Part shown: positions 4,657-52,668 of the stretch, one piece after another
How positions within the stretch are numbered: the stretch's first letter is position 1
How the letters are laid out: every line of letters begins with the position of its first letter
DNA from: Octopus bimaculoides
Lineage: Eukaryota
Assembly (NCBI RefSeq): GCF_001194135.2
Contig: NC_068982.1
Location: 69,848,097 to 69,902,740, forward strand
Direction: 5' to 3'
Length of the DNA stretch: 54,644 nucleotides
The notes under the pieces: generated by a model
Seen by the model: only the letters and a program-made list of their open reading frames with translations
Databases searched by the model: none
What the model was told of the DNA's origin: nothing
Made by a program: the position numbers and the translations under genes

Positions 4657-4959
4657 NNNNNNNNNNNNNNNNNNNNNNNNNNNNNNNNNNNNNNNNNNNN
4701 NNNNNNNNNNNNNNNNNNNNNNNNNNNNNNNNNNNNNNNNNNNNNNNNNNNNNNNNNNNNNNNNNNNNNNNNNNNNNNNNNNNNNNNNNNNNNNNNNNNC
4801 AAAACTATTTAATTCCAAGATTCATTTATGTTTAACAACTGAATGAATTTAATAACAACATCTAAATATGAAACGGCATGAAAATTGTTCAAACTGAAGT
4901 CCCTCTTGCGCAGCAAATTTCTCCCTTCGAGTCAATACAGAATTATAGATAGTATTTAT

Positions 4960-5810: not shown

Positions 5811-8564
5811 GTACATATATATGAAATAGACAGTTTATGGTTTCCAGGTCAATGCCTGTCATTTCAGTCTTCCCCAGTGTTACTAGAACAAAAAAGAAAT
5901 TCACTCAAAATATCGTAATCTTCCTTCTACTGATAAAATAGATTAATCAACTATAGACAAGTTAAAAGATATATCTGAAGTCAGGGGAAAGTAACGTAAA
6001 ACGGCATTATTAGAAAAAAAAATAGTTCCATATGTTACAAATCAGTCGGTAAATGTCTGAAAGCAGCTTTTGGCAAAGTTGTAAATAAATAAATAAAAAT
6101 ACATATATAAGATAAGATAAAAAAAAATTGTGAATTTGTGAAATAAATATGAAAGCAAGATAGCTAGAGTTATGTCCCTTGTAACAGGTGATCGTGTGGA
6201 ATATTCGACTAGTTTTGTGCGTGGCTCTCTCTCTCTCTCTCTCTCTCTCTGCGTGCGTGCGTGCATAGATTGCCGGCTAGACAAGCAAACAGACGTAAGT
6301 AAAATGTTATCATCATTATTATTTAACGTACGTTAATTGTATTTATTTATGAAAGCACACAAAAAAAACTGTGCAGTATATACACACAAACACACATAAC
6401 TATCTATCTAGTGAACTAGCTGCGGATGCACAGACAAAAACAGATAACTGTGCACCTTAGTATGTATTTATGAAGACTAAAAATTTATAGGTATGTGTGT
6501 ATGTGTGCATGCCCACACATATACATAAATGCAGACATGTATAAGTGTATGGATGCTTGCCCACATAAATACTACATGCATTTAGCATATGACAAGGCCC
6601 TAGGTCTATCATATTTTAACCCTGATGAAATACACTGCCTTTGTTTCAATTACTTTTGAAACTAATGAAGAATTTAGTCAAATAAGTTCATCACTATTAA
6701 ATCTCGTGTGAAAGCAGCAAGCTGACAGAATCATTTGGATGCCAGGCAGAATGCTTAGTAACACCTCACCCATCTTTATGTTCTGGGTTCAAATTTTGCT
6801 GAGGTCAACTTTGCCGTTCATCCTTTCAGGGTCGATAAAATAAGTACAAGTGAAATACTGGCACCAATGTGATTGACTAGCACTCACCCTTGAAATTGCT
6901 GGCCTCATGCCAAAATTTGAAACCAATATTAACAGGAAATTCTAATAAAGGGTTTTAATCCTTTACCATTTAAACTGTCCATATCCAACTCAAATGTTCT
7001 CCCTTTTCTATGTTCAAACTGGCTATATCTGGCCACTCACACCTACCCCCACAATGTCTTTCTAACAAATAAAAAACCAAACCATTGAAATCTTGAAGCT
7101 GTGAATAATGCATGATTAATTCAAAACAATGGGAATAGATAAGCATTATATTTGACAAAGGAATCATCATCATCATCGTCGTCGTCATTTAACATTTGTT
7201 TTCCATGTTGGCATGGGTTGGACGGTTTGACAGGAGCTGACCAGCTGAAGAGCTGTTCAGGCTCTATGCTAAAAGGTTAATTTAGATCACCTCAAAACAG
7301 GAGGCTTGTCTCATAGAACCAAAGTTAGCCTCAAGCAGGTTTGTAGCAAAAGGGTCAAGCTGGGTTCATTTTCATATATTGTCATTAATCTTTTTATTTT
7401 TTGTTTAAGAACAATAACTTTTCAAGATCCTTTATCATTTTAAAATCTTCCTGGGCTTATCCATTGGATGGAATGATCATATCAGCAGGCAGCATCATTA
7501 TCATCATCATTATATGCAGTCCATTTAACATGCTGGTATAGGTTGGACAGTTTGACCAGATGTGATGAACCAGAGAACTGTATCAAGCTCCAATTTCTGC
7601 CCTGGTAAGATTTTTATAGCTGGTGACACTGGCTTACGCTTGTTGTCTGATCCCCATATACTGCATTAATATTCCTCACATTTTCTGTTGCGTTGTTGCC
7701 ATTATTGAACTCATAAAACTAAATATGCTGAATATGCTCCTTTGTCACTTCCATTGTAGCTTTGAAAAAATAACTGTTAAAATCGAACTGCATTCTTCAA
7801 AACTTGCACTAAGAATAAGTACAAGGTAAAATTACTACCTGCTTTTATAGCAAGTTGATGCAGGTAGTTTATCCCATCCCCTCCAACTTTTGGTTCATGC
7901 AACTGAAAAAAAACGCAATATTTATGGGATGACCCAATAAATAATGGTTTCAGTGTCTAGGTTTGTTTTGCAATATAATGTGCTGGTGTAATAGTTTCTT
8001 GTTGTACCCCAGCCAGTGAAAACGTGTCGAACTCATATGTCAATTATAACAAATGTTACAATTTTTGTATTTTATATCTAAATTTGGAAACTGCTAAATG
8101 CTGGTGAAGACTTCTATCCCTCAAGTCATCACATCTTTGGTATTCCACTGGGTCAAGACTGGGGAAACCAAGAACATGTTTATGTCTGCTTGTGACTATA
8201 CAGGCTTCTAAAACAATTAGTAAAGATATGGTACAAGCTACCAAGTCATGCTTGCTTGTGAGTGACAGCTAAGCATACCTGTATGAGATACTTTCAAAAA
8301 GTATCCAATTTTACTTCTCGCCAAAACTAATGCCACATGGGCAAAATCCTTTAGGTGGGAAGTGACATCTCCCTTCCTGCGAAGAGAGGACTGATATCAA
8401 TAGAAGACTGCATAGAGAGTGGATGCACATGGCTTAGTGGTTAGGGTATTGGACTCATGATCGTAAGATTGTGGTTTCAATTCCTGGACTGGGTAACGCA
8501 TCATCTTCTTGAGCAAAACAATTCATTTCACATTACCCTGATCCACTCAGCTGGAATACTTTTT

Positions 8565-9472
8565 ACTGTATAGAGATGGCAGAACATGATATAGAAGTGA
8601 ATGTGAAGAATGGTACCAAAAGACTGTTTTCAGCTACCAGAGGAGAGAAGGAAGCTGTGGAGACTGCAATGGAATACAAGAAAAAAGAAAACAGGTGCAA
8701 GAAAGAACTATCTGGGGAAAAGAACTGCATGGTCAGCATCTTAGACAAATGCAAGATGAGTTTAGGATATGGCTGAAGAATGGAAACCTTAAGAAAGAAA
8801 TGGAAGCACTTATAAGGGCTGCTCAAAACCACTTATTGTGGATGAATATCAGTAAGGCAAAAATAGACAAATCTGAAAAAAAGTGCAAAGTGCAGAATAT
8901 GTAATGAGAAAGAGGAATCAGTTATGCACATAAGTCCCTGTAGTCTTTTGGTACAAAAGGGAATAAAGACATAGACATTATTCTGTGGCCAGGACATTAT
9001 ACTGGCACATATTATGATAAAGAGAATTTGAGGTAGGAAAAAATGGTACAAACATCAAACAGAGAGTACAATCAGGATAAGACTTTATGGGATTTTAGTG
9101 TACAGACTGATCAGGAACTTCATTCAAGGTAACCAAATATTATTGTTCTGGACAAGGGGAAAAAAGAGTGCATCATCATTGATGCGTCTATGTCTGCAGA
9201 CATGAGTGTAACAGTTAAAGAACAAAAGAAAATAGGAAAATACCAGGATTTAGCTAGGGAAATACGGAAACTGTGGAGGGTGTGTACAAAAGTAATCTTG
9301 GTCATCATAAGTGCCCTAGGTACATTCACCAACAGTTTGGCAGTTTTCTCATTGAGATTGATGTAACTATGAGAGTTGCGTTAATTCAGAAATCTGCTCT
9401 GTTGGCAACAGCAAGAATTGTAAGAAAGGTCCTTCATATCTAAGGTAACTGGTTGTGGCCTGGTACACACCA

Positions 9473-13998: not shown

Positions 13999-16510
13999 CT
14001 TTTATACATATATACAATATCTTATTTACCCAGAATGACCAACAGTAGTAAGACTTGAACTCAGAGATCTAGCAAGGTATTTAGTCCAATACTGTTCTAC
14101 TTGCTATTCTCTTCCTGCAATAAATTGTATTATTTATAGAAGCCTAAACTATTCATAACTTCATGTGAGAAACATGTTTGGCGAGCTGGCAGAATCGTTA
14201 GCACGCCGGGCGAAATGGTTAGCGCTATTTCCTCTGCTGCTATGTTCTGAGTTCAAATTCCGCCGAGGTCAACTTTGCCTTTCATCCTCTCCGGGTCGAT
14301 TAAATAAGTACCAATTATGCACTGGAGTTGATATAATCAACTTAATCCATTTGTCTGTCCTTGTTTGTCCCTTCTGTGTGTAGCCCATTGTGGGCAGTAA
14401 AGAAATAAGAAACATGTTTGGCCATGAGGAAATATTACCTTACTTGGAAACAGGTTGAGGGCTACTTCAATAAATTCCATCTAACCCATGCAAGCATAGA
14501 AAAGTGGACATTAAATGACAATGATGATTGTGGTGGTGACGATGATGATGATGATGATGCCATTAAAGGTACTTGTCTGTCTTGAGATTTTAAAAACCAT
14601 GAAATAAAACAATGAAAAAATAATGAATTACATAAAATAGTGAAAAGTGACCAAAATCTAATTGGAATCAATTGCCATCAATTCTGTTCAATTTCAATAA
14701 GATAGATAACAAGTAAAAATAATAAAAAATCAATGACTTGCAAATGTGATAATGCAGTCAATAATTCCTTTGAACGCTGTAACTTATTCAACCAAATCTT
14801 TAAATAGTTTCTCTTGTTTAAACTCACATATTTATTTTTGTTTTTTTTGTCTCTTTACTATCATTTACCTCGCAATCAATAGTGCAATAGTATGTTACAG
14901 TACATTTATCAGAATATAATACCTATTAATTACCAAAATAAATCAATACTGTTCAATACTAGGATCCCAATCCCATATAAAAAAAGAAAATCAAAGTGTA
15001 TTAATGTAGAATCAATTCCAGTTAGGCAGCATGGAATGCGATGACATTTCTTGTTTGTGTATTTTTCTTTTTCGTTTTCTTTGCCATTGTCCTCCTGTGA
15101 CATTGATATAAGTATAATGGGTTACTAGAATAGAAACATCAGTTGTCTGAATTTCTTTTGATAGAGGAAGGAATATTAGATTTCCAGATTAGATAGGGGG
15201 AGTCATTGTCATCATCATCACCACCACCACCATTATTACCATCCTCCTCCTCATCATCATCATTATCTTCTTTTCACACCCTCTTTTCTATACTGGTGTG
15301 GGTTGGATGATTCAACAGAAACCGGTGAGCTAGAAGAGTGCATTGCACTCCCAATGTCTGCTTTGGTATGGATTCTGCAGCCCCGACACCCTTCCGCATG
15401 CTGACCACTTCACAGTGTGTACTGAGTGCTTTTTTTTCATGTCACCAACACTGGTGGTTACCAAGTACTTGCAAAATAAAATCCCCACCTCCTCAAGTGA
15501 GCAGGGTAATCTATTAAGGAATGGGTAAAAAAAATGATTGAAGGACAGGAACAGGTTTCTTGCTGAAGAGGTAAATAAATACCTGCCCCCTCTAAGTTGG
15601 AAAATGAAAGAGAAAGAAAGACATGAGAAACTAAGGTTTTCATAAAAAGGCATAGTCTACCAAACAACATGACATCTCTATCTCTTGTCTTGAAAACCAT
15701 ATCATTATTACTATCACTATGTAAGGCAGCAAGCTAACAGAAGATAAAGGCATGAAGGAAAAACAGATGAAATGCTTAGTAGCGTTTCATCTGTCTTTAC
15801 CTTCTCAGTTCAAATTCCACTGAGGTCGACTTTACCTTTCATCCTTTTGGGGTTGATAAAATAAGTATCAGTTGAGTCCTGGGGTCGATGTAATCAACTA
15901 GCCCCCCCCCCCACCACCACCACACACACACACACAATTCCCTAAAATTGCTGACCTTGTGCCAGAATTTGAAACCATTGCTATCATCACCATTACTATC
16001 TTGCCACTCTCCCTCACTCTCTTCTACATCCTTCTACTTTCCCCAGCTCATGTGTCATTGGTTATCTATCACTTATTATATCCACCCTTTTCCTACCTCC
16101 CATCAGCCACNNNNNNNNNNNNNNNNNNNNNNNNNNNNNNNNNNNNNNNNNNNNNNNNNNNNNNNNNNNNNNNNNNNNNNNNNNNNNNNNNNNNNNNNNN
16201 NNNNNNNNNNNNNNNNNNNNNNNNNNNNNNNNNNNNNNNNNNNNNNNNNNNNNNNNNNNNNNNNNNNNNNNNNNNNNNNNNNNNNNNNNNNNNNNNNNNN
16301 NNNNNNNNNNNNNNNNNNNNNNNNNNNNNNNNNNNNNNNNNNNNNNNNNNNNNNNNNNNNNNNNNNNNNNNNNNNNNNNNNNNNNNNNNNNNNNNNNNNN
16401 NNNNNNNNNNNNNNNNNNNNNNNNNNNNNNNNNNNNNNNNNNNNNNNNNNNNNNNNNNNNNNNNNNNNNNNNNNNNNNNNNNNNNNNNNNNNNNNNNNNN
16501 NNNNNNNNNN

Positions 16511-30875: not shown

Positions 30876-33760
30876 NNNNNNNNNNNNNNNNNNNNNNNNN
30901 NNNNNNNNNNNNNNNNNNNNNNNNNNNNNNNNNNNNNNNNNNNNNNNNNNNNNNNNNNNNNNNNNNNNNNNNNNNNNNNNNNNNNNNNNNNNNNNNNNNN
31001 NNNNNNNNNNNNNNNNNNNNNNNNNNNNNNNNNNNNNNNNNNNNNNNNNNNNNNNNNNNNNNNNNNNNNNNNNNNNNNNNNNNNNNNNNNNNNNNNNNNN
31101 NNNNNNNNNNNNNNNNNNNNNNNNNNNNNNNNNNNNNNNNNNNNNNNNNNNNNNNNNNNNNNNNNNNNNNNNNNNNNNNNNNNNNNNNNNNNNNNNNNNN
31201 NNNNNNNNNNNNNNNNNNNNNNNNNNNNNNNNNNNNNNNNNNNNNNNNNNNNNNNNNNNNNNNNNNNNNNNNNNNNNNNNNNNNNNNNNNNNNNNNNNNN
31301 NNNNNNNNNNNNNNNNNNNNNNNNNNNNNNNNNNNNNNNNNNNNNNNNNNNNNNNNNNNNNNNNNNNNNNNNNNNNNNNNNNNNNNNNNNNNNNNNNNNN
31401 NNNNNNNNNNNNNNNNNNNNNNNNNNNNNNNNNNNNNNNNNNNNNNNNNNNNNNNNNNNNNNNNNNNNNNNNNNNNNNNNNNNNNNNNNNNNNNNNNNNN
31501 NNNNNNNNNNNNNNNNNNNNNNNNNNNNNNNNNNNNNNNNNNNNNNNNNNNNNNNNNNNNNNNNNNNNNNNNNNNNNNNNNNNNNNNNNNNNNNNTATAT
31601 ATATATGTATATATATTCTTTTATTCTTTTACTGGTTTCAGTCATCTAACTGCAGCTTTCTGGGGATTTATCAAACAAATTGACCCTAAGGTTTATTTTT
31701 TAAGCCCAGTACTTATTCTATCAGTCTCTTTTGTTGAACTGCTAAGTTACAGGGATGTAAACATACCAACACTGGTTGTCAAGTGATGATGGGGGGGGGG
31801 ACAAACATAGACACAAAGATATATACATATATAGACAACAAGCTTCTTTCAGTTTCTGTCTACCAAATCCACTCATGAGGTTTTGGTCAGCCTGAGGCTA
31901 TAGAGGAAGACACTTGCCCAAGGTGTCACACAGTGGGACTGAACTTGGAACCATGTGATTGGGAAGCAAGCTTCTTACCACACAGCCATGCCTAAAAAAT
32001 AGATGGATTGTGGTTCACTACAGCTGTTTCAGACATGTTTTTTATTGATGGGCAGAAGTGTTGCATCGCACAAAAAAAGTGTTTTCATCAGGTAAATATT
32101 AGAACTTCTCAAGAACACGTACATAGTGCCAAATGACTCAGCCCACCCAAATGTGGTCAGAGAGTGAAAAGTTCAAGTTAGTATCAAGTTTATAATGAGG
32201 AAATCATTAAAGGTAAAGGGGTAAAGCAGGGTAAAGGTCCTTCCCAAGTTATACAGAATCATAGGGCTGGTTTCTTGGTTTCTCCAGTGTATATATTCCC
32301 ACTGGATAGGACGCTGGTCGATTGCAGGATTACTCATTTTTGCCAGCTGAGTGGACTGGAGCAATGTAAAATGAAGTGTTTTGTTCAAGAACACAACACT
32401 TCACCTGGTCCAAGAATTGAAACCACAATCTTACAATAATGAGTCCAGCACCCCTAACCACTAAGCCATACACCTCCACATTCATTAAAGAGCCTGGATC
32501 AGAAAGGGAAATTGATGAAGTATGTAGAAGCAAGTGAAGAGAGAAAGACTAAAATGAAGAGAGAGAAGACAGTACATGATCTTGTTTGACCTCGTAAAGG
32601 GTTATAAATAAAATTAATGTTGTTTCTAAATAGTTGACAGGGTCTTTATATTGATAAACAAGAGTAATCATTTAATATACATAATTACAGAATAGCTACT
32701 ATTAGTTTCACACTTTTAAGATACATTAAATTAACAGATTTATATGACATGCCATGTATCTTCTCCAAGCAGTCTTTCAGGCTCAGTTCATCATATGTCA
32801 GATATGTTTAAAAACCAGGACACTGGGCAATGAGAAAACATGAGAGAAGAACGAGAAGAAAAAAATATAATGCGAAGAAGGTTGATGCAAAATGTGAAAC
32901 AAAAATAAAGGAAAGAAAAGTAAAAATAACCAAGATCATCCTCTTTGCTTGTAGAAATCATAATTAATGTAGTTTATGCAGAGTCTGTGAGAGAGCAACT
33001 CAATATGAAGCAGGCAGTATCTTCTAGTTATATTATGATGATGAAAATGATGACGACGACAATGATGGTGACAATGATGATGATTTTCTTTATTATATAT
33101 GTAGTGAATATATATAGTGAGAACTACAGGGATAAGTCTTGGTCTTGAAAAGTTTGATGTTGCAAGTAACAAGAGAAATATATAATTAGAAAGTGTTTTG
33201 TTAGCTCTCAGTATTGATACTTCTCTGCAATATGACCAAAGATTAACATTGACTCAGTCACCATGACAATGATGTCTTTGTTGTCATTGTCACTGATGTC
33301 ATCATCACCATTATCATCACTACCAACACCAATACCACAATCATCATCACCACCACCACCACCATCACCAGTACTATTATCATCATCTTTTAGCATGCAT
33401 GTTCCATGCTGGCATAGAGTGGACAGTTTGGCACCTAGAAATGCATTGTGCTCCAATGTCTGCTTTGGCATGGTTTCTATGGGTGGATACACTTCATGAC
33501 ATCAGCTACTTTACAGTATTGGGCACTTTTTTTTTTGTGGAACCAGCTCTAGTGAGATCACCATGCAGATCACAAGACTAGTAGGTAGGCCAAAATACAA
33601 AGAGAGGCAATTTTATGCCAGGAGATCAGAAGTGAAAGTATGAGAGGAAAGACCAGAACAGAATAGATTTGTTGCTGTAAAGGCATTACATGGCTACTCA
33701 CAAAGAGAGAGTAAGAGTTAGTAGGATGGAACTTGAAAGAGAGAACGTTCTCTTACTCAC

Positions 33761-37124: not shown

Positions 37125-37757
37125 NNNNNNNNNNNNNNNNNNNNNNNNNNNNNNNNNNNNNNNNNNNNNNNNNNNNNNNNNNNNNNNNNNNNNNNNNNNN
37201 NNNNNNNNNNNNNNNNNNNNNNNNNNNNNNNNNNNNNNNNNNNNNNNNNNNNNNNNNNNNNNNNNNNNNNNNNNNNNNNNNNNNNNNNNNNNNNNNNNNN
37301 NNNNNNNNNNNNNNNNNNNNNNNNNNNNNNNNNNNNNNNNNNNNNNNNNNNNNNNNNNNNNNNNNNNNNNNNNNNNNNNNNNNNNNNNNNNNNNNNNNNN
37401 NNNNNNNNNNNNNNNNNNNNNNNNNNNNNNNNNNNNNNNNNNNNNNNNNNNNNNNNNNNNNNNNNNNNNNNNNNNNNNNNNNNNNNNNNNNNNNNNNNNN
37501 NNNNNNNNNNNNNNNNNNNNNNNNNNNNNNNNNNNNNNNNNNNNNNNNNNNNNNNNNNNNNNNNNNNNNNNNNNNNNNNNNNNNNNNNNNNNNNNNNNNN
37601 NNNNNNNNNNNNNNNNNNNNNNNNNNNNNNNNNNNNNNNNNNNNNNNNNNNNNNNNNNNNNNNNNNNNNNNNNNNNNNNNNNNNNNNNNNNNNNNNNNNN
37701 NNNNNNNNNNNNNNNNNNNNNNNNNNNNNNNNNNNNNNNNNNNNNNNNNNNNNNNNN

Positions 37758-39110: not shown

Positions 39111-39547
39111 GTTAGAACTTCCTCCACCCAATTCTTATTCTTGAAACAATACTTTCAGAGCATCCTCCACCATTGCTAATTTGGTTGCCTAGGTAACAGA
39201 AACTATCTACAACCTCAAGAGAGCCTACTGGGCATTTGAGAGAATCTAATTCTCATGTGCTCTTAGTGCTTATTGTTCCTGCACATCTGCCACATATAAA
39301 GACTACTTTATCTGTTAATCTACCTGTGATTCCACTGCACCTCTAATGTATCTATAGTTTACACTGGGTACAGCGAATGGAATTTCTTCCAACTCCTTTC
39401 CTACATATTCAGCAGGGCCATTTTGCTGATGGAGAGAGAGTTTTATCTTCTTTCTTACTAACACTTTTGTCTTAGCTAGGTTAACTTTAAGGCTCTTTGA
39501 TTCCAGGTTTTGTTTTCATATCTGGAATTTCTTCTCAAATTCTGCTA

Positions 39548-40420: not shown

Positions 40421-43390
40421 CTATGTCAGCCAACTTTTATCTCTATGCTCTCCAACACCATTGACACTTCATCAATATATCAAGATGTTCCTGAAAAAAG
40501 GAGACGTAAAACATAATGCTAAATTTAGCCCAAATACCTGGTACTGTCATCATCATCGTCGTCGTTGTCATCATCATCATCATCATCATCACTCTTTAAC
40601 ATCCGTTTTCCCTGCTGGCATGGGTTGGACAGTTTAACCAGAGCTGGCAAGCAGGAGAGCTGCACCAGGTTCTAGTCTGATTTGGCCTGGTTTTTATGGT
40701 TGGAAACCCTTCTTCATGCCAACCACTTTACTGGGTGCTTTTATGTGACACTGGCACTAGTGTTTTTTATGTGGCACTGGTACAAGACTCTTGCAGGCCA
40801 ATCCTCTTCACTAGGGAATGTGGCCTTAACACTTCTGCTGTGGAGGATGTGTCTTCTTGAGTAGAGCAAGTTGTCAGATATCCTGGTCTTTTGTCATTTT
40901 CTCTGAAAAGTTCAGTGTCCTGAGGTTGTCTTTCAGTTCTTCATTCCATGTCTTCCTGGGTCTCCCTCTTCCACAAATTTCATCCACTTCAAGTGATCAG
41001 CACTTCTTTATGGAGCTGTTGACATCCATCCACATCACATGACCAAACCAGCACAGTCTTCTCTCTTGCACAAGTACTCTCCATTCAATCAGTTCCCATT
41101 TCATGTCACCCTCCTCTTCACACATATCATCCACTGCTCTTCCCCGCCATCCTGATACCCCTTTTCTCTCTTGCTATCCAGATCCATCTCACTTGTTAGC
41201 CAGTCTTCATCCATTAATATTCTTCTCCATACCCATGTTACAGTGGGCCATCCCCGCTCCCTGGACCACCAAATTGTCTCTCCTCATGCATTACACCAGT
41301 TTATCTCACTACTCTGCTTCTACAGCCGACCCAAACACATCATCTCTCTTCTCCCTTCTACTGTCAATAATATCATGACCACTCTGCTGCCAGCATTCCT
41401 GTAGTCTCCCAAACTTGTGCACCCCCTACCCTCAACCCTTCCTCAATCTCTACAGATGTTACTGACATCTTTCTCCCACTTCCGGCTGGAGAAACCATGT
41501 CAAAGCAGATATTGGAGCACAATGCAATCCTTCAGCTCATCAGATATCCTTGTCAAACCATCCAACTTATACCAGCATGGAACATGGACATAAAATAATG
41601 ATGATGATTTCAGGCTACAGATAGAAAAGGCAATGGACTTTTGTATTATGACAACAGTACAATATCACTGAATTCTCTCGGTCATGTTCAGAATTCCTAA
41701 CTGTATAAACATGTTCTATACATAATGAAACTTTTCCATACTAACACATATTTTCTCAAAACACTAAGTAAAATAAAACAAATGAAATATATCCAAACAG
41801 AGAGGAACAACTATTTCAAACTTTAGATTTGGCTGATCAAGAATTTGTATCTGCATTATGTCACTGCTTATCTCCATTACAATTGTTTTAATTTTTTTTT
41901 TTTTTTCAAGTGTTTTACAGAAAAAATAGACCAGACGTAAATAGGATACTTTTGAAGAAGTGTCCACATGATTCACAGTAAAACAAAACTTCATTCCTCA
42001 ATGTTGACTCACACTAGATTCCATGTCATCAGACATGACAAAAGATAAAACTTTTATTGAGAGAAATTCTTCAATGCATTTCACACTCACACACTGTGTA
42101 CCATGTATAGTGCCATTCCATTATCTATTGAATGAATAAAATGGTCTCATTCTTCCATTCTAATGTTATACTGCTGAATTTAAAAAAAAAAAAAAGCTGT
42201 AAATCTTGAAGCTTTTGTAGTTAATATTTAATACTGCAGGGTGCAGGCATGGAAGGTGCAGGCATAGCTGTGTGGTTAAGAGGTTTGCTTTCCAACCATG
42301 TGGTTTCAGGTTCAGTTCCACTGCATGACACCTTGGGTAAGAGTGTTCTACTATAACCCTAGGCTAACCAAAAGTTAGTGGATTTGGTAGATGGAAACTG
42401 AAAGGATCCCATTGTGTGTATGTGTGTGTGTGTATGTGTGTGTGTGTGCATGCATGCGTATGTGTGTTTGTGCCTCCTCATCTCGACACCATGTGACAGT
42501 TGTAAATAAGTTCCACCATCATACAAGCAGTGTTATTCATTTCCAATCTTCCATTAAAACATGTCCAGGCATAGGGAAATACTCCTGCATTTGAAAAGAA
42601 ATGAGTTGGCAACAGGAGAGGTTAACTGACTATAGAAAAATCTGCCTCAACCAATTCCATCTGATCTATGCAAGTATGGAAAAGCGTACGTAAAGGATAA
42701 AAAGGGACATTAAGGATAAATGATAAAGTCAATCCTGTAAGTATACTGGTCTCATAGACAAGTGACGTTTGTCTATATGAGACTTGAAACGGGAGGAGGC
42801 AATGATGTATACTACCTAAAGTGTTAACAGGTTATACTTTATATACATCAAAAACTAGAATAAAAAACTCACTATTCTCTTTTTCTCTTTTGAGTCAGGA
42901 AAGGACAGTACATATCGCACTTTACAGAGCCTCTGAGACTGATGAGAAGGATGGTGAAAGATATCCACAAACCAGAGACCTTATCTATATTCTTGCAGCA
43001 CAGTGGACTGTATGGAAAGTAATTTAAAATGCCATGAAGTGGTGTTAAACTGGATAGTGGATTGACCCTTTACCTGTCCTGTGTATCACATAGGATACAC
43101 ATGACATATTCCCCTGGTGTCCACACATTCCCAGTTTTCTTCAACCACTAGAGTAACTTGGGACTTATGGAAGGAATGCTTTATATTACCCAGAACACAT
43201 ATTACTCAGAACGTATGAAGCAAGGGCTAGCTAAAAGTCTGAAAACAAGCATGGACATTTAGAACAAACTTATGGAAATGCTTTGGACAGGCAAAGGGTT
43301 AAGTCAACCGAATTCCATGGTGGAATTTTAACCTTTCATGGTCTACTTCAGTTATAGGCTTAATCTGTCTAGATTATTTACATTCTAGAT

Positions 43391-44090: not shown

Positions 44091-44250
44091 TCTTGAAATC
44101 TAATCTGAGATGCAGAACATAATCAAAATCAATGCCCTCTTTTTTAACAATTTCTCCAGCCTCATACTTTGGTCCTTGTTCTTCAACTGCTTGAAGTAAC
44201 ATACCTTCCTCAATAACTGCTGGTTCAATGGAATCATAGAGGCGGCTCAT
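44091..44250 (-). CDS. DRC3: DRC3 first coding exon (MSRLYDSIEPAVIEEGML...VLHLRLDFK), 160 coding nt, phase 1; exon starts at 44255
   Basis: Matches the DRC3 N-terminus (vertebrate EPRVMDDDMLKLAVGDQGPQEEAGQLAKQEGI..VLSLQLDFR). Acceptor TTTATTTCTTAG lies 5 nt before the ATG; donor A|GTAAGT. Confidence 0.95.
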
Positions 44251-46143
44251 TGTATCTAAGAAATAAAAACATATTTTTTAAATGTCAAATAGCATAAATC
44301 TTATAAAAGAAATATGGCAGATGAGTAGTTAAGGTGCTAAAGGTAAACACTGCAAAACAACTTACTGCAAATATTATATTGATGCCTTAAGTAAGGTCTT
44401 TGAAGCAGTCTGCTGAAAACATAACTCCCTGACACTTTATAGTTAGCTTCCCTTTTTTCGGAAACATTATCTTTTTTTATAAGAACTGCATTTCACTGCA
44501 GAACTATCTAGCATTAATTGATGTAATGCAAATATAGCAAATCTTTGACTTAGGTAATCCCTTGTGATGTTAAAAACAAGATTTAAACTCTCTGTCAATC
44601 TAGTGTCTTATAAAGAAGTTTTTTTTTTATCTGGATCACAAGACACTCAGCACAGAATCAACAATACAAATGCAGATCCAATGGACTGATGTTTCTCAAA
44701 CCATGCCCAGGGTAATTTTAGCCTTCTATTTCTTTAGATTGAAAAAACAAAATGCCAAATTGACTAAAATTGTGGACCTACTTATAGTGGGACCATCAAC
44801 TCATAAATGTTCTGTATTCAATGCCCATTTTATTTATCATATAAAGTAGTATAACTAGAGTTTGTACAATTTGGGTTGTCTTTGACTTTGGCCCCAACTC
44901 ATGAAAAACACATGATAAAGATTTCTAATTTAGGTACAAGGTGAACAATTTTTAGGGGAGGGGTTTAGTTGATACCATCAGCCCTAGTACTTGATAGGTA
45001 CTTTATTTTATCAACCCCAGAGGGATGAAATACAAAGGTGACTATGGCAGAATTTGAACTCAGAACATAAAGAAAAGAACTGGAACAAATGCTACAAGGT
45101 ATTTTTTTCTGATGTTTTTGTGATTCCTTTGCAGCCCACTATCTGATATAATACACAATGTAATACTCATCAAAAGTGCCATTATCCCAAAAATGCCACC
45201 CACAGTGGGCCACACCCTTTAGCTTGCTTTTATTATTAATAAATTTCACTTCAATGCAGATGATATCACTTTACCCCTTCCTTATCTTCCTACGTACAAG
45301 CTTTGTCCATGTGCAGCCTAGACACTTCATGTCAAACCTATCTCCAATGGGTACACAATAAACTGGTCTCCTTCACTGCATATATCAAAGAAACAGTATT
45401 GAACCTCTTCCTTTCTAGTCTTGAAGAACAGACAATTAAACTCCTCAAAGTAGCAATGTATTCAATGCATTACAATTACAAGCAACCTTTCCAACATAGT
45501 AAACACTTTACCCTAAATACTAACCTTCCTCTTCAAAACCAGAAAGATGATTCAATTCTGAACACCTTTTGAACCTCAATAATGCTCAAATAAGACCCAA
45601 ATTGAAAAGTCCACAACTAAAAGGAAATCATTTGACCAATAGACAAGGACTCTTTCACCAATTCATTTCAACCACTAGTACACTGATGTACTGATCCCAG
45701 TCTTCCTTTTCTCTAATAACAACAGCCTTTGCTCCTTACAGATAACTATCTGCATACCATCCCCACTAAAACTCTTTTTATCCCCCATACTGTATCTACC
45801 CTCCCAGGCCCACAGCCCATTTTTATTTCCAACTGTTTCTTTCTTTCTTCTTATACTGTCAACCATCTGGAATTACTGGTGGACTTTTGGAATAGCTATG
45901 ACTACCTTCCTCATGGGCAAGGAACTAGGTGGCTGTTTGTTTCTTCCTTCAGTATTCCACTGTTTCTTGCAATGGGAATTACAATGGTGAAAGAATTTTT
46001 TTCTAAAAATTCCATTTTTACATTTTTGCTTCTCAATTCCTTGCCCTTTTTCTTTTCTTTTCCATGATTTTAGCTATTCCTAAACTCTGCCGAATTCATT
46101 TCCTGCAACAGTTTTTTTTATTTCCCCAAGTCATTGATACATA

Positions 46144-47390
46144 CCGTAAAAACTCATGTAATTTACACACTTTTTTTTGCAAAAATAAAAATAAACTTTA
46201 GGAGGTGCGTAAATTACATGAGTTGATCATTTCCAGAATTTATTTTGTACAAAACAAACATTCATATTGGAAATTGACTCACTTCATGTCAGAATAGGTT
46301 TTGACAGAATAAATAATGGCTTAAATATAATGAAGTTAACTTTTATTTATGCTGGATGATATAATACTTACTTTTTCAATATAAATTTACTAAAACCATT
46401 AAATGGTTAACTACTTTTTGAAATCTAAGGTTCATGCTGGTAAACACAGTCCAGGCCATATTTTACATTGCTTGGAGTATTTTACATATTTTACATTGCT
46501 TGGAGTTTCTACCTGTCACAATGACTGAAAAAAATGTAATGATATGGATAATCTTGATTGTATGTTTTTATTTTTGTCTGTTTATTACTAGGCACAGTTT
46601 TAAGTTTGTTGTATTGTTTATGCCAATTTCAAACATTAGCTTCGTTAACATTAAAATGCCTTCTGGCAGCTATATTGCCACATTCAAATGCATATTCAAT
46701 ATATTTAATTGCTCCTTTTCAATAAACAATTCATAAGTTCTGCCCATACGAACAATAATGGTAATGACTAATTTTAAAGTTTGCTTGACATTTTATAAAT
46801 GTGAAAGGGACTAAAATTTCGATACTCCATATCAAAGGTTCCGACAAGAATAAGCAGAAAAGAATTCTGTTTGCATAATCAGTTTGATCAGTCGCCTTCC
46901 TCTGCTAGTTGAGTAAAGAGTCATCCAAGCTGATGTTTATTGGTAGTTAAACTTAATTTGCAACTCCTGTACATAATTATCGGCTTTGTTTTTGTTGATA
47001 ATTCTTATCAACAACTTTTCCTGTGATCGTGATTTGAGACAACATACAGCAGTATGCTAAAGATCAGACAATCGGTTGTGGGCAAGAAATGTAAAATAAA
47101 GTTCATTATAAACAACACAAACACTTTGTAATTTAATAGTTTTCAATATGATACCTGTTAAATAGAAATTACTTTTATTCAATGAAAATTTTATAAAATC
47201 TAATCAAAAGTAAGTGAAACTATACTAAATACAAATAAATTGAAAACATTCTTCCCTTGGCCATATTGGCAATTCTGAAAACATTTGGATGTGAATTTTA
47301 CATGAGTAGAAGCTTTTTTTTTAACAAATTTTATCCTGAAAATTACCAGCGTAAATTATACATGTGTGCAAATTACATGGGTTTTTACGG
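46144..47390. mobile_element. Non-autonomous Tc1/mariner-superfamily (pogo-like) DNA transposon, 1247 bp
   Basis: TIRs CCGTAAAAACTCATGTAATTTACACAC / GTGTGCAAATTACATGGGTTTTTACGG (2 mismatches), with TA duplicated on both sides. Subterminal GCGTAAATTA motifs. No intact transposase ORF. Confidence 0.8.
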
Positions 47391-47487
47391 TATATAAAAC
47401 TACAAAAAGGGAAAACTGAGATGAAAGGAAACATTTCAATTCAGCTTTTCATTTAATATCATTATTATTCAGAACTGTAATTGCATC

Positions 47488-48838
47488 AGCCAAAATGCTA
47501 AGTAGCATTTCTTCCACTTTATGTTCTGGTTCAAATTCCACTGAAGTCAACTTTGCCTTTCATCCTCTTGAGATCAATAAAATAAGTACCAGTTGAGCAC
47601 TGAGGTCAATGTAATTGACTAGCCTCCTACCCACAAAAATGTCAGGCCTTGAGCCTACAATAGAAAGGATTTAAAGATAGTGAGCTGACAGAATGGTTAG
47701 TATGTTAGCCAAAATTCTTAGAGGCATTTCATCCATCTTTATATTCAAATTCTGCTAAGGTCAACTTTGTTTTTCATCCCTTTGGAGTTGATGAAATAAG
47801 TACCAGTTGAGCACTGGAGTTGATATAATTGATTAGGCCTCTTACTTGAAATGTCAGGTCTTGTGCTTATAGAAGAGAAGAAACAATTATTATTATTATT
47901 ATTATTATCATTAAGACACAAAGCTGGCAGAATCATTAGCACACCAGGCAAAATACTAAGCGGTATTTCACCTGTTGCTATATTCTGAGTTCAAATTCCG
48001 CTGAGGTCAACTTCGTCTTTCATCCTTTCAGGCTTGATAAATTAGGTATCAGTGAAACACTGAGGTCGATGAAATCCACTAGTCCCCTACCCACAAATTT
48101 CAGGCCTTGTGCTTATAGTACAAAGCATTATTATTATTATTATTATTTTGTTGTTGTTGTTGTTGTTATTGTTATTGTTATTATTATGATGATGATGATG
48201 ATGATGGTAGAGAGCTGGCAGGACCGTTAGCGCTATTTCGTCTGTCATCACATTCTGAATTCAAATTTCACCAAGGTCGACTTTGCCTTTCATCCTTTTG
48301 GGGTCAACAAAATAAGTACCATTTGAACACTGGAGTCAATGTAATCAACTACCTCTACCCAACAGATTTCAGGCCTTGTGACTATAGTAGAAAGGATTAT
48401 TATTATTATTATTATTATTCAAAATTGTTACCACACGAAACAAAATGCTTAGCAGCATTTCTCCCACCTTTACATCCTGAGTTCAAATTCTGCTGAGGTC
48501 GACTTCGCCTTACATTTCTTTGGGGTCAATAGAATAGCGTACCTGCCAAGTACTGGAGTCAGTGTAATCAACCAGATCCCTCCCGCAAAAGTTTAGGTCT
48601 TGTGCCTTACAGTAAAAAAGGTTTGTTATTATTCAGAAACATTACCACGTTGAACAAAATGCTTAGCGTTGTTTCATCCAGCTTTACGTTCTGAGTTCAA
48701 GTTACGCGAGGTTGACTTTGTCTTTCATCTTTTGGGTTCGATGAAATAAATAACAGTTAAACACTGAGATGATATAATCGACTAACGCCCTCCCTCAAAA
48801 ATTCAGGTTTTGTGTCTTTAGTAGAAAGCATTATTATT
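47488..48838 (+). mobile_element. Head-to-tail array of about 6 family-B SINE copies separated mostly by (ATT)n tails
   Basis: GTTCAAATT..TGAGGTC.ACTTTG..TTTCATCC repeats in the same orientation, starting at about 47490, 47680, 47915, 48210, 48440 and 48650. Confidence 0.85.
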
Positions 48839-49107
48839 CCACATTTTCCACAATAATATACTAGTTTTTTTTAAACATACACGTTTAATTATATTATGTC
48901 ATTTTCGACATTATTTATATATATATATAATGAAAACTATTTGAAATAAATAAAATGAAAAGACGTTCTGAAAGTGTTTATCGAGGTTTTAACAACATAA
49001 CAGAAAATGCCATTATTTACATAGCACGTGTTTTAAAATAGAAATGACAAACCATATTTGATAGCGGAATATTCATATTAGTGTAGGTGTTTGCTAGTAA
49101 GACTTAC

Positions 49108-49200
49108 TGCTGATATTTCGGGCCTATTTTAATTCAGAATCGAGCTTTTCTATACAAATTTTGATGATGCTATTCACTTTTCTCGGTAATTTCACCGCGT
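49108..49200 (-). other. DRC3: Probable non-coding first exon of DRC3 (left boundary firm, TSS approximate)
   Basis: The ATG exon has an acceptor at 44256, so an upstream exon is required. A perfect donor GCA|GTAAGT lies at 49107 in a CpG-retaining region. The segment has no upstream ATG. Confidence 0.6.
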
Positions 49201-49422
49201 CAAGCTGTTGTCAAGGTTACGGGCATATCCGTAGAATATATTTAGGTTAAAATTTAATTCTTAATAGTTATTTTAAAATTTCATTTTCATAAACTATAAT
49301 TTATTGTTTTAATTTTAAATAATAATAATTGGTATTTAATGATTTGTGAAGAAAATATACATTGCTAAAAATAAAAATCAGCAAAACTTAGTGACGTCAT
49401 TGTATGGAAGTCAAAAATCAAA
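49200..49422. promoter_or_regulatory. Compact bidirectional promoter (DRC3 <- -> TOM1/TOM1L2)
   Basis: RFX X-box-like GTTGTCAAGGTTAC (49207-49220), palindromic CRE TGACGTCA (49392-49399), ETS-like GGAAGT (49406-49411) and YY1-like AAAATGGC overlapping the ATG (49420-49427). Confidence 0.7.
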
Positions 49423-49480
49423 ATGGCAGCTCTGTTTGGACACGGAAATCCTTTGAGTACTCCTGTCGGACAGTTAATCG
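49423..49480 (+). CDS. TOM1L2: TOM1/TOM1L2 family (VHS-domain endosomal adaptor) first coding exon: MAALFGHGNPLSTPVGQLI+G, phase 1
   Basis: GNPLSTPVGQLI(E) matches the TOM1-family N-terminus (MEFLLGNPFSTPVGQ..E). It is followed by G|GTAAAT at the same phase-1 position, with a strong start context AAAATGG. Too short for the ORF track. No second exon found in the window. Confidence 0.85.
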
Positions 49481-52400
49481 GTAAATTTTCTTAAATTTTA
49501 TAGGTCTTATTCTATTATTCTTGTATTGACCTTAGTACGCACTTCAACTGCTTCAAAATAAGCCAATATGTCTTACTGACATGTTTTTTCATCGTTATTT
49601 TATTCAATTTCAATGCTAACGACATATAAGAATTTGTCCACAAATTGGGGGATTTATTTTACTATAAAATTCTTATTATTAATGGTACCTGAGTTTATAA
49701 TCATTTTTTTTTATTGAATCTGCCTACTTTCTCTGATTAATTCTGTCACGCACTAACAGATGGTTTTGGTTGTGGATTCTTGTATTTCACTATTATTATC
49801 ATTACTAGTATTATTTCTTTATTGATACTCATATTGCAATTCATTAAATCAGAGCGATTTAATGTTGTTATATTCTAAAGCTATTTATTTACTTGTTTCT
49901 GATCACCGTAAAAAATGGGTTAGCCTGCTTTTAACTTTAATGACAATAACATGTCAGTTATATGGAATCTGCGCATTTTAAAGAGATACTTTCGACTTCT
50001 AAAGCTACACTGTGTATGTGATTTATTGTACTAACCCATATATATAATTTCGATCATCAAATGATGAACCTTCGATCGTATATTTGTACTTTGATTTCCT
50101 TCTTAAATTCTCGAAACATCTAATTCTAAATTCCATCCGATCCTTTCAGTTAATATAAAAATGAAGAAAAAAAAATTGATAACGCATCGTAGTTATGCTT
50201 TCTTGTTTAACGTAGAACCTAAATCGCTTGTGGGAATTTTAGCATGCCTTCAAAAATGTAATTGGATAGTCTCAGTAAAAGAAGGCGATATTTGAGTATA
50301 ACGTACCAGTTTCACTTTCCCAAACTTCAACTGGTATCAGGTTTGTTTGACGGCCACGGAAGGGTTATTTTTTTCATCTTTATTGATACTATGCTGTGGC
50401 CAGCTCGTTTATCTCAGGAGATATTTTAAGGTTTTGTTGTTTAAGACGGAAGGGTGTGATTCTATCATTTCAGACTGTTTAATAGTTGTTGTTGTTTCCA
50501 TTTAGCTTTCAGTTTGTAAGTACTACTCCCCCTCAGTTATGTTTGCCGACCACTAGTTGTCATCGTTATCTGTTTACTACTACAAGTACCTGACTGTAGA
50601 TAGGCGGATTCTCCTTGGAAATTTCTCTGTATTTCTCCATAGCTGTAGATAATGGTCCTATTATCACGCAGGACATTTCTACAGAAATACCGAACATATT
50701 TATACATTATACGCTATAACGCCATATTGAATGGTGTAGCATTATTATACACTCCCCCTTTAAGGTTTCTGAAGAGACACACACCATGTTTTGAACACAT
50801 TTGGTGCGGTTTCTCAGAAAAAGGGCTCTTAAGAAAAGAAAAGGTTTTGAGATATGTCAAACTAATTGCAAATTGACAAAATATCTTTAAGGTTTGGATG
50901 ACTATCATTGGCAACGCCGTTTACATCATAAAACGGTTTCAATAAGGAAAGTATGTTTGTTTTTGTTTTCTAAGGGCACTTTTTATTGATACAGTTGTTT
51001 GATGCGATTTATTTTGAGGTTTATTTAGTTACGATTAAACGAAAATTACTGAAGAATGCACACTGCACAAGACCAGAACAATTATAGGCGGAGTTTTGGA
51101 ATAGCATTCACTACATGTGGAAGGAAAAGGGCAAGGAAATTGGGTATTTTTCCCCCTTCGTTTTCTTTCTTTCTCCTTTTTTTTCTTTTTAGTATTCTTG
51201 TATTTCATATAACAGGAATTGTGATAGTGAAAGTATTTTTTTCAAAAATTTCAATTTTTTTTTTTACAATTTTGCTCCCTAAATTCGATGCCCTTTTCCT
51301 TCGCCATGAGGTGGTCGCGATAGCTATTCCGAAACTCCGCCCAGTTTATAAACTGATTATGTTGTATAAGGCATGTGTGTTGTTGGATTCAGAGCAGTCC
51401 GATTGTTATCGATGGAATCAATCTAGATTAGATGAATATCTTATGGTGAAAATAGACGAAATATAGTATTTCCACATAAGGTATATCAGAAGCCAGTGGA
51501 GGAGAGACCACCACTTGAAGAAGTGTAACATTGAAGGGCGATATATTGTTCGTAGATCAAATTATACTCTGGAGATTGATGTTTGTATGATGGAAATATA
51601 ATTATTAGTCCATGTATTTGACCACTATATTGTAAACCGCACTAAGGATTTCATAAATCCGGCTAATTGTCCTGCACACAAACACAAGGTTTGGCCTTTA
51701 GGTTTAATGCGAAGAAAAATTGAATTAAATGTATTGGTACCTCTGATGAATAGTTACCTGAAAGAATTAAAGTGTATGCGGCGCATATGAGCATGGTGAT
51801 GGCCAAAGCATTGGAAAATATTGTGACTGCTAATTCTGGAATATGATCCGTAAATTGTTTATTCATTTCATGAATTAGCTGTTCTGCAATATAAAATTAC
51901 TTCGATTTACTGTAAATTACAACGGTCGAGCATTGACCGAAAAATTCCTTTCGTTTGTGTTAATTGCCATAGCGGTATTATTTTCATTTGTTTCTAATTC
52001 ATATTGGTAAAGTATTATTGCGAAACTGGAACGAATGCTGAAGAAGATCGCCGAGACTAGATAGGGAAGTGGCAATTTGCGTGAATAATTTATCTGGTAT
52101 TTTTACCTTTAAAAAAGAAGACTATAAACAAGTCAATTATTTACATATTAGAACTCATAAAAACAAACAAAAAAATATCATAACTATTTCTTACATTGGA
52201 GCCTCCATGTGATTACTCGACATGCTAAAAATAGCAACCAAGTTACAGTACAAAAACAACAAACAAGAACATGTCATTTCAAGACATTCTGATACAATCA
52301 TACACTCCAATAATAACAATACAAAAAAAAAAAAAAATTATGGATTGAACCAGTTTGTGCAATTCATTATTTTGTGCACAAAAAAATGTGGTTTCCTTAG

Positions 52401-52668
52401 AACACAGAAAGCACATGGTTTCAGGTTCAGCCCCATAGCGTGACACCTTGAGCATCTTACTGTAGCGCTATCAACCAAGCCTTGTTAGTAGATTTGGTAG
52501 AGGGAGCCTGGAAAAAGCCTGTCATATATGTGTGTGTATCCTTGTTTTGACACCGTGTGGGTTCAGTCCCACTGCATGGCACCTTGGGCAAGTGTCTTCT
52601 ACTATAGCATCGGGCCAATCAAATCTTTGTGAGTGGATTTGGTCGCCGGAAATTGAAAGAAGCCCATC

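Follow-up and report, generated by a model that had tools for sequence, protein, structure and literature searches.

The closest described counterpart of the octopus locus analysed here is the human TOM1L2–DRC3 (LRRC48) pair at 17p11.2, where the two genes are divergent neighbours less than 1 kb apart and are followed by ATPAF2 and GID4; this adjacency can be seen in any genome browser. Human TOM1L2 and DRC3 are listed together at 17p11.2 in published work (PMC5527106). Both gene families and their head-to-head orientation recur in Octopus bimaculoides, in a stretch of 54,644 nucleotides referred to throughout as the window. Octopus differs from human in that its start codons are 5.2 kb apart, since DRC3 has a long (predicted) 5′-UTR intron. 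The spotted gar has TOM1-family / DRC3 / ATP12 (ATPAF2) / Vac_ImportDeg (GID4), matching the human order, and the starfish has TOM1 / DRC3 / ATPAF2, whereas in Argonauta, the one octopod examined beyond the 3′ end of DRC3, a glycosyltransferase gene and not ATPAF2 is found there. In gar the promoter, GC-rich and carrying CCAAT-type motifs, differs from the octopus one in having no CRE near the ATG.

Three broader classes of genome organization invite comparison. The 5′–5′ pairs of Irimia et al. 2012, exemplified by HSPD1–HSPE1, resemble TOM1–DRC3 in that two unrelated genes have remained divergent neighbours across animal phyla and are separated by a short conserved gap, a signature that those authors ascribed to shared cis-regulation (PMC3514665). 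Co-expression is strong for HSPD1 and HSPE1 but not uniform for TOM1L2 and DRC3. In the RFX/X-box promoters of cilia genes there is a likeness in that a 13–14-nt X-box-like palindrome lies near the predicted DRC3 start at a conserved position, and conservation of site together with position is a published criterion for real X-box targets (PMC2375033). The octopod site differs from typical X-box promoters, however, in deviating once from the consensus and in occupying a gap common to a second gene. Genomic regulatory blocks, composed of a developmental gene and its bystanders, likewise have their linkage kept by regulatory sequence, but they span tens to hundreds of kb with enhancers in bystander introns, as opposed to a promoter region of ~0.3–0.7 kb. 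No paper on the evolutionary conservation of the TOM1–DRC3 pair or of its promoter was found among the papers searched. TOM1–DRC3 is a well-documented addition to the known class of conserved bidirectional pairs and no new kind of genome feature.

Gene identities at the octopus locus

The TOM1-family gene enters the window by a single exon.

49423–49480, + strand: first coding exon of the TOM1-family (VHS+GAT) gene, ATG at 49423–49425, encoding MAALFGHGNPLSTPVGQLI plus 1 nt

This exon is of phase 1, reads ATG GCA GCT ... ATC g|gtaaat and has the GT of its gtaaat donor at 49481–49482. Later exons lie past the window end; exon 2 was found neither in the window nor in the O. sinensis and Argonauta flanking sequence examined, and the VHS and GAT domains are not encoded in the window because exon 2 is beyond its end. 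Exactly this peptide, MAALFGHGNPLSTPVGQLI, opens two annotated genes with Pfam VHS and GAT domains, one of 545 aa in O. sinensis and one of 552 aa in Argonauta, the first exons of which align to 49423–49480. Assignment of this exon to a TOM1-family gene, made by a first-pass annotation of the locus, is thus confirmed by octopod VHS+GAT annotations that begin with an identical exon, and these same two genes answer, as far as annotation goes, the concern raised there that the exon might be joined to a gene of another family. The TOM1-family N-terminus M..F/L..GNPFSTPVGQ.IE, with a phase-1 intron after 'GQxI', appears in the window as MAALFGHGNPLSTPVGQLI|g. Close variants with an identical exon boundary occur in TOM1-family genes of clam (Solemya, MASLFGHGNPLATIVGQLV), annelid (Owenia, ..GGNPFSTPVGQ), amphioxus (MSFFGGSPFSTQVGQRI), starfish and gar (MEFLLGNPYSTPVGQCI), and the neighbours of DRC3 in amphioxus, starfish, gar and Owenia match the VHS and GAT regions of TOM1L2, their first exons ending alike (tblastn).

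A protein search with octopus exon 1 joined to starfish and amphioxus TOM1 exons was dominated by vertebrate TOM1L2, with no cephalopod among the matches listed. Invertebrate deuterostome genes carry the name TOM1-like 2 in this search, and the named proteins among the 120 best vertebrate matches are all TOM1L2, which suggests TOM1L2 as the most conservative vertebrate paralogue. "TOM1L2" is not strictly the right name for the octopus gene, which is probably the one undivided invertebrate relative of the three vertebrate genes TOM1, TOM1L1 and TOM1L2. Protein P0314, considered as the octopus TOM1 product, has the same length as the Argonauta product and was rejected as non-octopod.

On the opposite strand, the DRC3 start codon is located at 44250 in an exon opening MSRLYDSIEPAVIEEG..., and the exons run leftwards from there (tblastn), those below exon 2 with boundaries good to ~3 nt.

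44091–44255, − strand: DRC3 exon 2, with acceptor tgtttttatttcttAG, ATACA and ATG 44250; 53 codons plus 1 nt; donor 44090–44089
36493–36377, − strand: DRC3 exon
33931–33761, − strand: DRC3 exon
28769–28650, − strand: DRC3 exon
20813–20700, − strand: DRC3 exon
18130–17957, − strand: DRC3 exon
9933–9799, − strand: DRC3 exon

Protein P0122, the DRC3 of O. bimaculoides, is matched with 100% identity by every DRC3 exon of the window, which places the window in that species. Used as a database query, the first three retrieve DRC3 of annelids, molluscs and vertebrates, no near-identical short protein being among these matches. A longer query finds DRC3 of Octopus sinensis, O. bimaculoides and Argonauta hians best, and the named proteins among its top matches across animals are DRC3. 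The 328 aa encoded in the window contain Pfam LRR_4 and LRR_8 above cut-offs, and the coiled-coil region of DRC3 is matched by the later exons. Best among solved structures are DRC3 chains in axoneme cryo-EM models (9fqr, E 1e-76; 8j07, E 4e-73); the next structural family is PPP1R7 (E 3e-36). Judged by these matches, the − strand gene is DRC3 / LRRC48, a subunit of the nexin–dynein regulatory complex of motile cilia, and not a member of another LRR family. Four N-gaps interrupt the window, a draft scaffold, and the one DRC3 exon absent from it (aa 149–197 of the O. sinensis protein) probably sits inside the N-gap at 30876–31595. The C-terminal third of DRC3 (last ~145 aa) lies beyond the left window end.

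Distribution and age of the gene pair

The DNA around DRC3 was compared in octopods, Solemya, Owenia, amphioxus, starfish, gar, Nematostella, Ciona and Batillaria. Gar, amphioxus, starfish, Owenia, Solemya and three octopods, representing six independent bilaterian lineages, all have a VHS+GAT gene in head-to-head orientation to DRC3, with these distances from start codon to start codon:

Spotted gar: 1760 bp
Branchiostoma lanceolatum (amphioxus): 795 bp
Acanthaster planci (starfish): 2137 bp
Owenia fusiformis (annelid): 2545 bp
Solemya velum (protobranch clam): 2634 bp
O. bimaculoides (window): 5172 bp

Upstream of the DRC3 ATG, and on the other strand, the VHS+GAT gene of O. sinensis begins at a distance of 4.8 kb and that of Argonauta at only 1.45 kb. 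The divergent orientation and deep conservation proposed in the first-pass annotation are both borne out by the pair's presence in deuterostomes, an annelid, a clam and octopods, the last with genomes that are heavily rearranged. Occurrence in deuterostomes and in spiralians places the pair in their common ancestor; by this distribution, it predates the protostome–deuterostome split. Of the lineages suggested for a survey, amphioxus, the annelid Owenia and the bivalve Solemya have the pair, whereas the cnidarian Nematostella lacks it and has a PDZ+Arfaptin gene upstream of DRC3, consistent with either an origin in the bilaterian stem or a loss in that cnidarian. Ciona is also without the pair, an RGS gene being found upstream of its DRC3, and at the locus examined in the snail Batillaria DRC3 is present as three intron-poor copies in tandem, no VHS gene lying within 10 kb of them. 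Given the loss in Ciona and the lack of TOM1 within 10 kb of the Batillaria copies, the constraint on pairing is not absolute.

Candidate control elements in the gap

The intergenic part of the locus and the adjoining intron sequences contain the following features.

44256–49107, − strand: predicted DRC3 5′-UTR intron of 4.85 kb, with SINE clusters at 44912–45073 and 47453–48838
49108–49200, − strand: predicted non-coding DRC3 exon 1 (5′ end predicted), suggested by the conserved donor and the Owenia layout
49207–49220, − strand: X-box-like site of the RFX type, GTAACCTTGACAAC (+ strand reading GTTGTCAAGGTTAC), at 202 nt from the TOM1 ATG, invariant in three octopods
49364–49383, + strand: TATA-like, AT-rich block GCTAAAAATAAAAATCAGCA, immediately 5′ of the CRE
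49392–49399, palindromic: CRE/ATF-type site TGACGTCA, its end 23 nt short of the TOM1 ATG, invariant in three octopods
49481–49796, + strand: conserved start of TOM1 intron 1 (~320 bp), with perfectly conserved 25–32-nt blocks (alignment A2)

The 5′ end of DRC3 is predicted from two splice signals. A strong 3′ splice site, tgtttttatttcttAG|ATACA-ATG, has its acceptor 5 nt ahead of the DRC3 ATG, and such a textbook acceptor immediately before a start codon leads one to expect an upstream non-coding exon. A GTAAGT donor for it is present at 49107–49102 of the − strand (ACTTAC at 49102–49107 on the + strand), and the last exon base, 49108, is 315 bp from the TOM1 ATG. This GTAAGT is the sole GTRAGT on the − strand within the first 520 bp from the TOM1 ATG. 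It is kept in O. sinensis and in Argonauta, in the latter 319 bp from the TOM1 ATG, and the acceptor is found 5–6 nt before the DRC3 ATG also in Argonauta and Owenia, and ~60 nt before it in Solemya. Owenia mirrors the layout as a whole, having an X-box, then ~100 nt, a GTAAGT at +305 and an acceptor 6 nt before the DRC3 ATG. The acceptor near the ATG and the donor, conserved in Argonauta and mirrored in Owenia, give good support to a predicted non-coding exon 1 of DRC3 with its end 315 bp short of the TOM1 ATG; the stretch 49108–49200 is without ATG. The spacing of 315 bp put forward in the first-pass annotation stands, in that GTAAGT is at the site and conserved in octopods, with the exon itself predicted; the figure refers to the donor of the predicted exon, the start codons being separated by 5172 bp. 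Octopus DRC3 sequence clusters comprised genome contigs only, and no octopus transcript contig with an RNA-level trace of exon 1 was found among them. A search of 43.5–51 kb for structured RNA gave no Rfam match.

The gap is conserved among octopods. In the three-octopod alignment (A1), mean column identity is 85% across its whole length, and the TGACGTCA site, the AT-rich block, the GTAACCTTGACAAC site and the GTAAGT donor are invariant; the first 19 bases of GCTAAAAATAAAAATCAGCA (49364–49382) fall in an invariant 23-nt run, 49361–49383. When the window was compared by BLAST with the 34-kb Argonauta locus, the best non-repeat match paired Argonauta 8176–8808 with window 49796–49178 (78% over 639 bp, 491 bits), which outscores every DRC3 coding exon. 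Apart from this promoter block and the 19 nt directly preceding the ATG, the predicted intron gave no alignment with Argonauta. Absence of transposons from the gap, to which the first-pass annotation had drawn attention, is true by self-BLAST (36% of the window is repeated; 49108–49423 is not) but not unusual: comparable repeat-free stretches, such as 48839–52408 and 45074–47452, are common in the window. It is weak evidence for that reason, and we rejected it as a sign of constraint.

The palindrome TGACGTCA occurs once in the 54.6-kb window, compared to 0.29 copies expected, and has a background of 0.039 per kb in all sequence examined. Measured from the TOM1 ATG, it is positioned at +23 in octopods, +9 in Solemya, +31 in Owenia and +46 in amphioxus, hence 9–46 bp before the start codon in four of the six lineages; none was present near the TOM1 ATG in the gap sequences compared from starfish and gar. 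The probability of four in six lineages having the site within ~50–60 bp is ~4e-10, or 6e-7 at the highest local density, both values being indicative since the windows were chosen post hoc. The adjacent GCTAAAAATAAAAATCAGCA is possibly a core-promoter element of TOM1.

For the X-box, the C. elegans-style consensus GTHNYY-N2-RRNAAC was fixed as the search pattern before the other species were examined, and spacers of 1 and 3 nt were added for their scan. It matches the window at 7 positions, 49207–49220 among them, compared to 5.9 expected, which is no more than chance; its background is 0.27 per kb in all sequence examined. The gap site, situated ~100 nt upstream of the DRC3 donor, has counterparts at similar distances from the TOM1 ATG: +202 / +214 in octopods, +189 in Owenia (GTTACCACAGCAAC), +218 in amphioxus (GTTGCTAGACAAC) and +175 in starfish (GTTCCTTGACAAC), so that four of the six lineages have an X-box-like site at 175–220 bp. 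Gar has sites at +493 and +570, and Solemya has the half-site GTTGCC only, at ~+192. Four of six lineages in one 100-bp window correspond to P ~1.5e-5, or 3e-4 corrected for 20 windows, again indicative only with windows selected post hoc. Against the published consensus RYYNYY N1-3 RRNRAC (PMC2375033), the sites of Owenia, amphioxus, starfish and gar are full matches and the octopod site has one mismatch. Nematostella and Ciona, in which DRC3 has a different neighbour, also have X-box-like sites ahead of the gene, at −103 and −52 respectively, and we assign the X-box to DRC3 on this ground; the findings fit an RFX element associated with DRC3. A perfect X-box at 39184–39197, within a DRC3 intron, was dismissed as a regulatory candidate. 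It falls in a reading frame, ..VDSFCYLGNQ.., that resembles a LINE reverse transcriptase, and in O. sinensis it is matched only by a diverged repeat copy oriented the other way.

Probable divergent transcription from one region, and alternative explanations

The observed gene identities, orientation, splice signals, motifs and phylogenetic distribution of the pair are in our judgement probably explained by two genes divergently transcribed from one short conserved region (~49100–49425), their adjacency held by the promoter arrangement. We infer the start sites, the binding factors and promoter sharing as the cause of retention from the arrangement of these elements. On the TOM1 side, the TATA-like block and the CRE/ATF site TGACGTCA, both within 60 bp of the ATG, would direct initiation; on the DRC3 side, the X-box ~200 bp away would be followed by a ~60–100-nt non-coding exon ending at 49108, which would be spliced across the 4.85-kb SINE-filled intron to the acceptor 5 nt before the DRC3 ATG at 44250. 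The donor at 49108, the X-box at 49207–49220 and the TOM1 ATG at 49423 predict TOM1 and DRC3 start sites at most 250 bp apart. One promoter would be CRE-driven and broadly active, the other RFX-driven and active in ciliated cells, and, placed back to back, they would be too close and probably too interleaved for a chromosomal breakpoint to fall between them without damage to one. The adjacency would thereby have survived from before the protostome–deuterostome split, and such a lack of room for a breakpoint has been put forward for conserved 5′–5′ pairs in general (PMC3514665).

How far the regulation is held in common is a separate matter. The first-pass annotation had paired an endosomal adaptor with a motile-cilia gene, which is right as regards the gene families; TOM1L2, however, has ties to cilia too. 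As the ubiquitin adaptor of the BBSome, it links K63-ubiquitinated receptors to that complex so that they can leave the cilium, and in tom1 mutants of Chlamydomonas ubiquitin builds up in cilia (doi 10.1101/2022.09.23.509287). With this published role, a common ciliary input via the X-box is conceivable. Mouse osteoblasts express Tom1l2 but not Lrrc48 (PMC5527106). As the two genes are not strictly co-expressed in mammals, "shared" may mean adjacent, not common, regulation.

Passive survival is an unlikely alternative. It holds that a few hundred bases present a tiny target for breakpoints and that the motifs are each gene's own promoter, with neither shared regulation nor selection for linkage. 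Loss of the pair in Ciona, its not being seen at the Batillaria locus, the discordant expression in mouse osteoblasts (PMC5527106) and an ATG-to-ATG spacing ranging from 795 to 5172 bp would all be compatible with it. Yet the pair has been kept in six independent lineages, octopods included, CRE and X-box retain their order and spacing from one phylum to another, and short-gap divergent pairs are a class shown to be kept by regulatory constraint (PMC3514665).

A reading in which the adjacency is real, DRC3 starts just upstream of its ATG exon or elsewhere in 44.3–49.1 kb, and the conserved block is solely a promoter or enhancer of TOM1 appears quite improbable. In its favour, the DRC3 start within the gap is a prediction, the Argonauta BLAST block stops at 49178, short of the donor, and the X-box could serve TOM1, since TOM1L2 itself acts in cilia. 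Hard to reconcile with it are the conserved acceptor, which precedes the DRC3 ATG by 5–6 nt in octopods and in Owenia (~60 nt in Solemya), the GTAAGT donor at a matching distance in Argonauta and mirrored in Owenia, and the retention by DRC3 of an X-box-like site where TOM1 is not its neighbour; in addition, similarity between Octopus and Argonauta upstream of the ATG exon ends after 19 nt. An artefact of assembly or annotation, or a chance TOM1 match of the 58-nt exon, is scarcely credible: the window is from a draft scaffold with four N-gaps and the lone exon matches human TOM1L2 weakly (tblastn, E = 0.18), but no N-gap occurs from 37758 to the window end, and the independent assemblies of O. 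sinensis and Argonauta have the same arrangement, with VHS+GAT genes starting at this exon.

Divergent transcription from one short region, to which we return as the preferred explanation, can be extended to a more specific proposal that we advance tentatively and regard as doubtful in its full form. The gap would be a single interleaved control unit, the layout of which (CRE within ~50 bp, X-box at ~200 bp, short non-coding DRC3 exon) pre-dates the protostome–deuterostome split and was kept as both genes serve cilia, RFX at one X-box raising both in ciliated cells. If true, a rare promoter "grammar", and not just gene order, would be conserved across phyla. Few non-paralogous adjacencies persist from the bilaterian ancestor, and fewer are tied to a control region small enough to dissect. 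Within ~320 bp, molluscs, an annelid and amphioxus share two recognisable motifs that keep their position, one of which, the X-box, is shared by an echinoderm as well, and with simple dual-reporter constructs of this region the locking of gene pairs by shared or overlapping promoters becomes testable. Linkage of DRC3 to the cilia-acting TOM1L2 may reflect common ciliary regulation. Under the single-unit proposal, TOM1(L2) would retrieve ubiquitinated ciliary cargo and DRC3 would regulate beating.

Conserved blocks, repeats and an X-box-like site in the octopus introns

The ~320 bp with which TOM1 intron 1 begins (window 49481-49796) show conservation with Argonauta equal to that of the promoter. 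Rfam returned no match for this block; it could be a downstream promoter element or an enhancer within the intron, or else represent an alternative exon. Perfectly conserved stretches lie within it:

49481-49796, read on the - strand: perfectly conserved blocks, e.g., ATCCCCCAATTTGTGGACAAATTCT and AAAAACATGTCAGTAAGACATATT

On the DRC3 side, the intron following the ATG exon holds a block of ~115 bp (window 41981-42094) with 73.5% identity to the corresponding Argonauta intron, containing TGAGTCAACAT, an AP-1-like core, together with ATGAAGTTTTGTTT.

A DRC3 intron also harbors an X-box, and the predicted 5'-UTR intron of the gene carries clustered SINEs:

39184-39197, within a DRC3 intron: X-box, perfect palindrome GTTGCCTAGGTAAC
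44912-45073 and 47453-48838, within the predicted DRC3 5'-UTR intron: clustered copies of an abundant octopus SINE

The intronic X-box is probably a decoy and not an enhancer. The reading frame that it falls in encodes ..VDSFCYLGNQ.. and looks like a fragment of a LINE reverse transcriptase, and the site's counterpart in O. sinensis is only a diverged repeat copy. The SINEs contain the sequences ..tcatcc.tc.ggggt.gataaaataa.. / ..cccctccc.aaaaatt.., and up to 15 related copies were found elsewhere in the window.

A DRC3 exon and the assembly gaps

Residues 149-197 of the O. sinensis DRC3 protein have no corresponding exon in the window, and the 472-aa O. bimaculoides protein model also lacks it. 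The assembly is interrupted at four places:

4657-4799: N-gap
16111-16510: N-gap
30876-31595: N-gap
37125-37757: N-gap

The absent exon most likely sits in the gap at 30876-31595, with the consequence that the public O. bimaculoides DRC3 model would be one exon short.

DRC3 copies and X-box surroundings in other lineages

In the locus of the snail Batillaria attramentaria (L002), DRC3 occurs as an array:

L002 6812-15911, one strand: three tandem DRC3 copies

Each copy has at most one intron, TGACGTCA sites occur in pairs upstream of copies 1 and 2, and no TOM1 gene is present within 10 kb of the copies. The array looks like a retrocopy that was later duplicated in tandem; an intron-rich parental locus, should there be one, did not turn up.

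Solemya velum has a second, full-length DRC3 protein (P0171, 526 aa), whose chromosome-scale contig is not the one that carries the DRC3 gene adjoining TOM1 (locus L001). The latter is annotated at only 243 aa and is followed directly by a 113-aa gene. Either DRC3 is duplicated here or the gene model has been split. The Solemya TOM1-DRC3 gap contains a long inverted repeat (L001 8340-8900) with arms of ~240 bp and several ACGT-core sites in the central segment between them; the repeat resembles a MITE insertion within the predicted DRC3 5'-UTR intron.

The octopod and starfish X-box sites are without an adjoining GCGCCAT(A/T)TTG, a YY1-type motif (CGCCATnTT) that follows the X-box within 1-2 nt in Owenia (L009 7644-7670) and amphioxus (L006 9423-9448).
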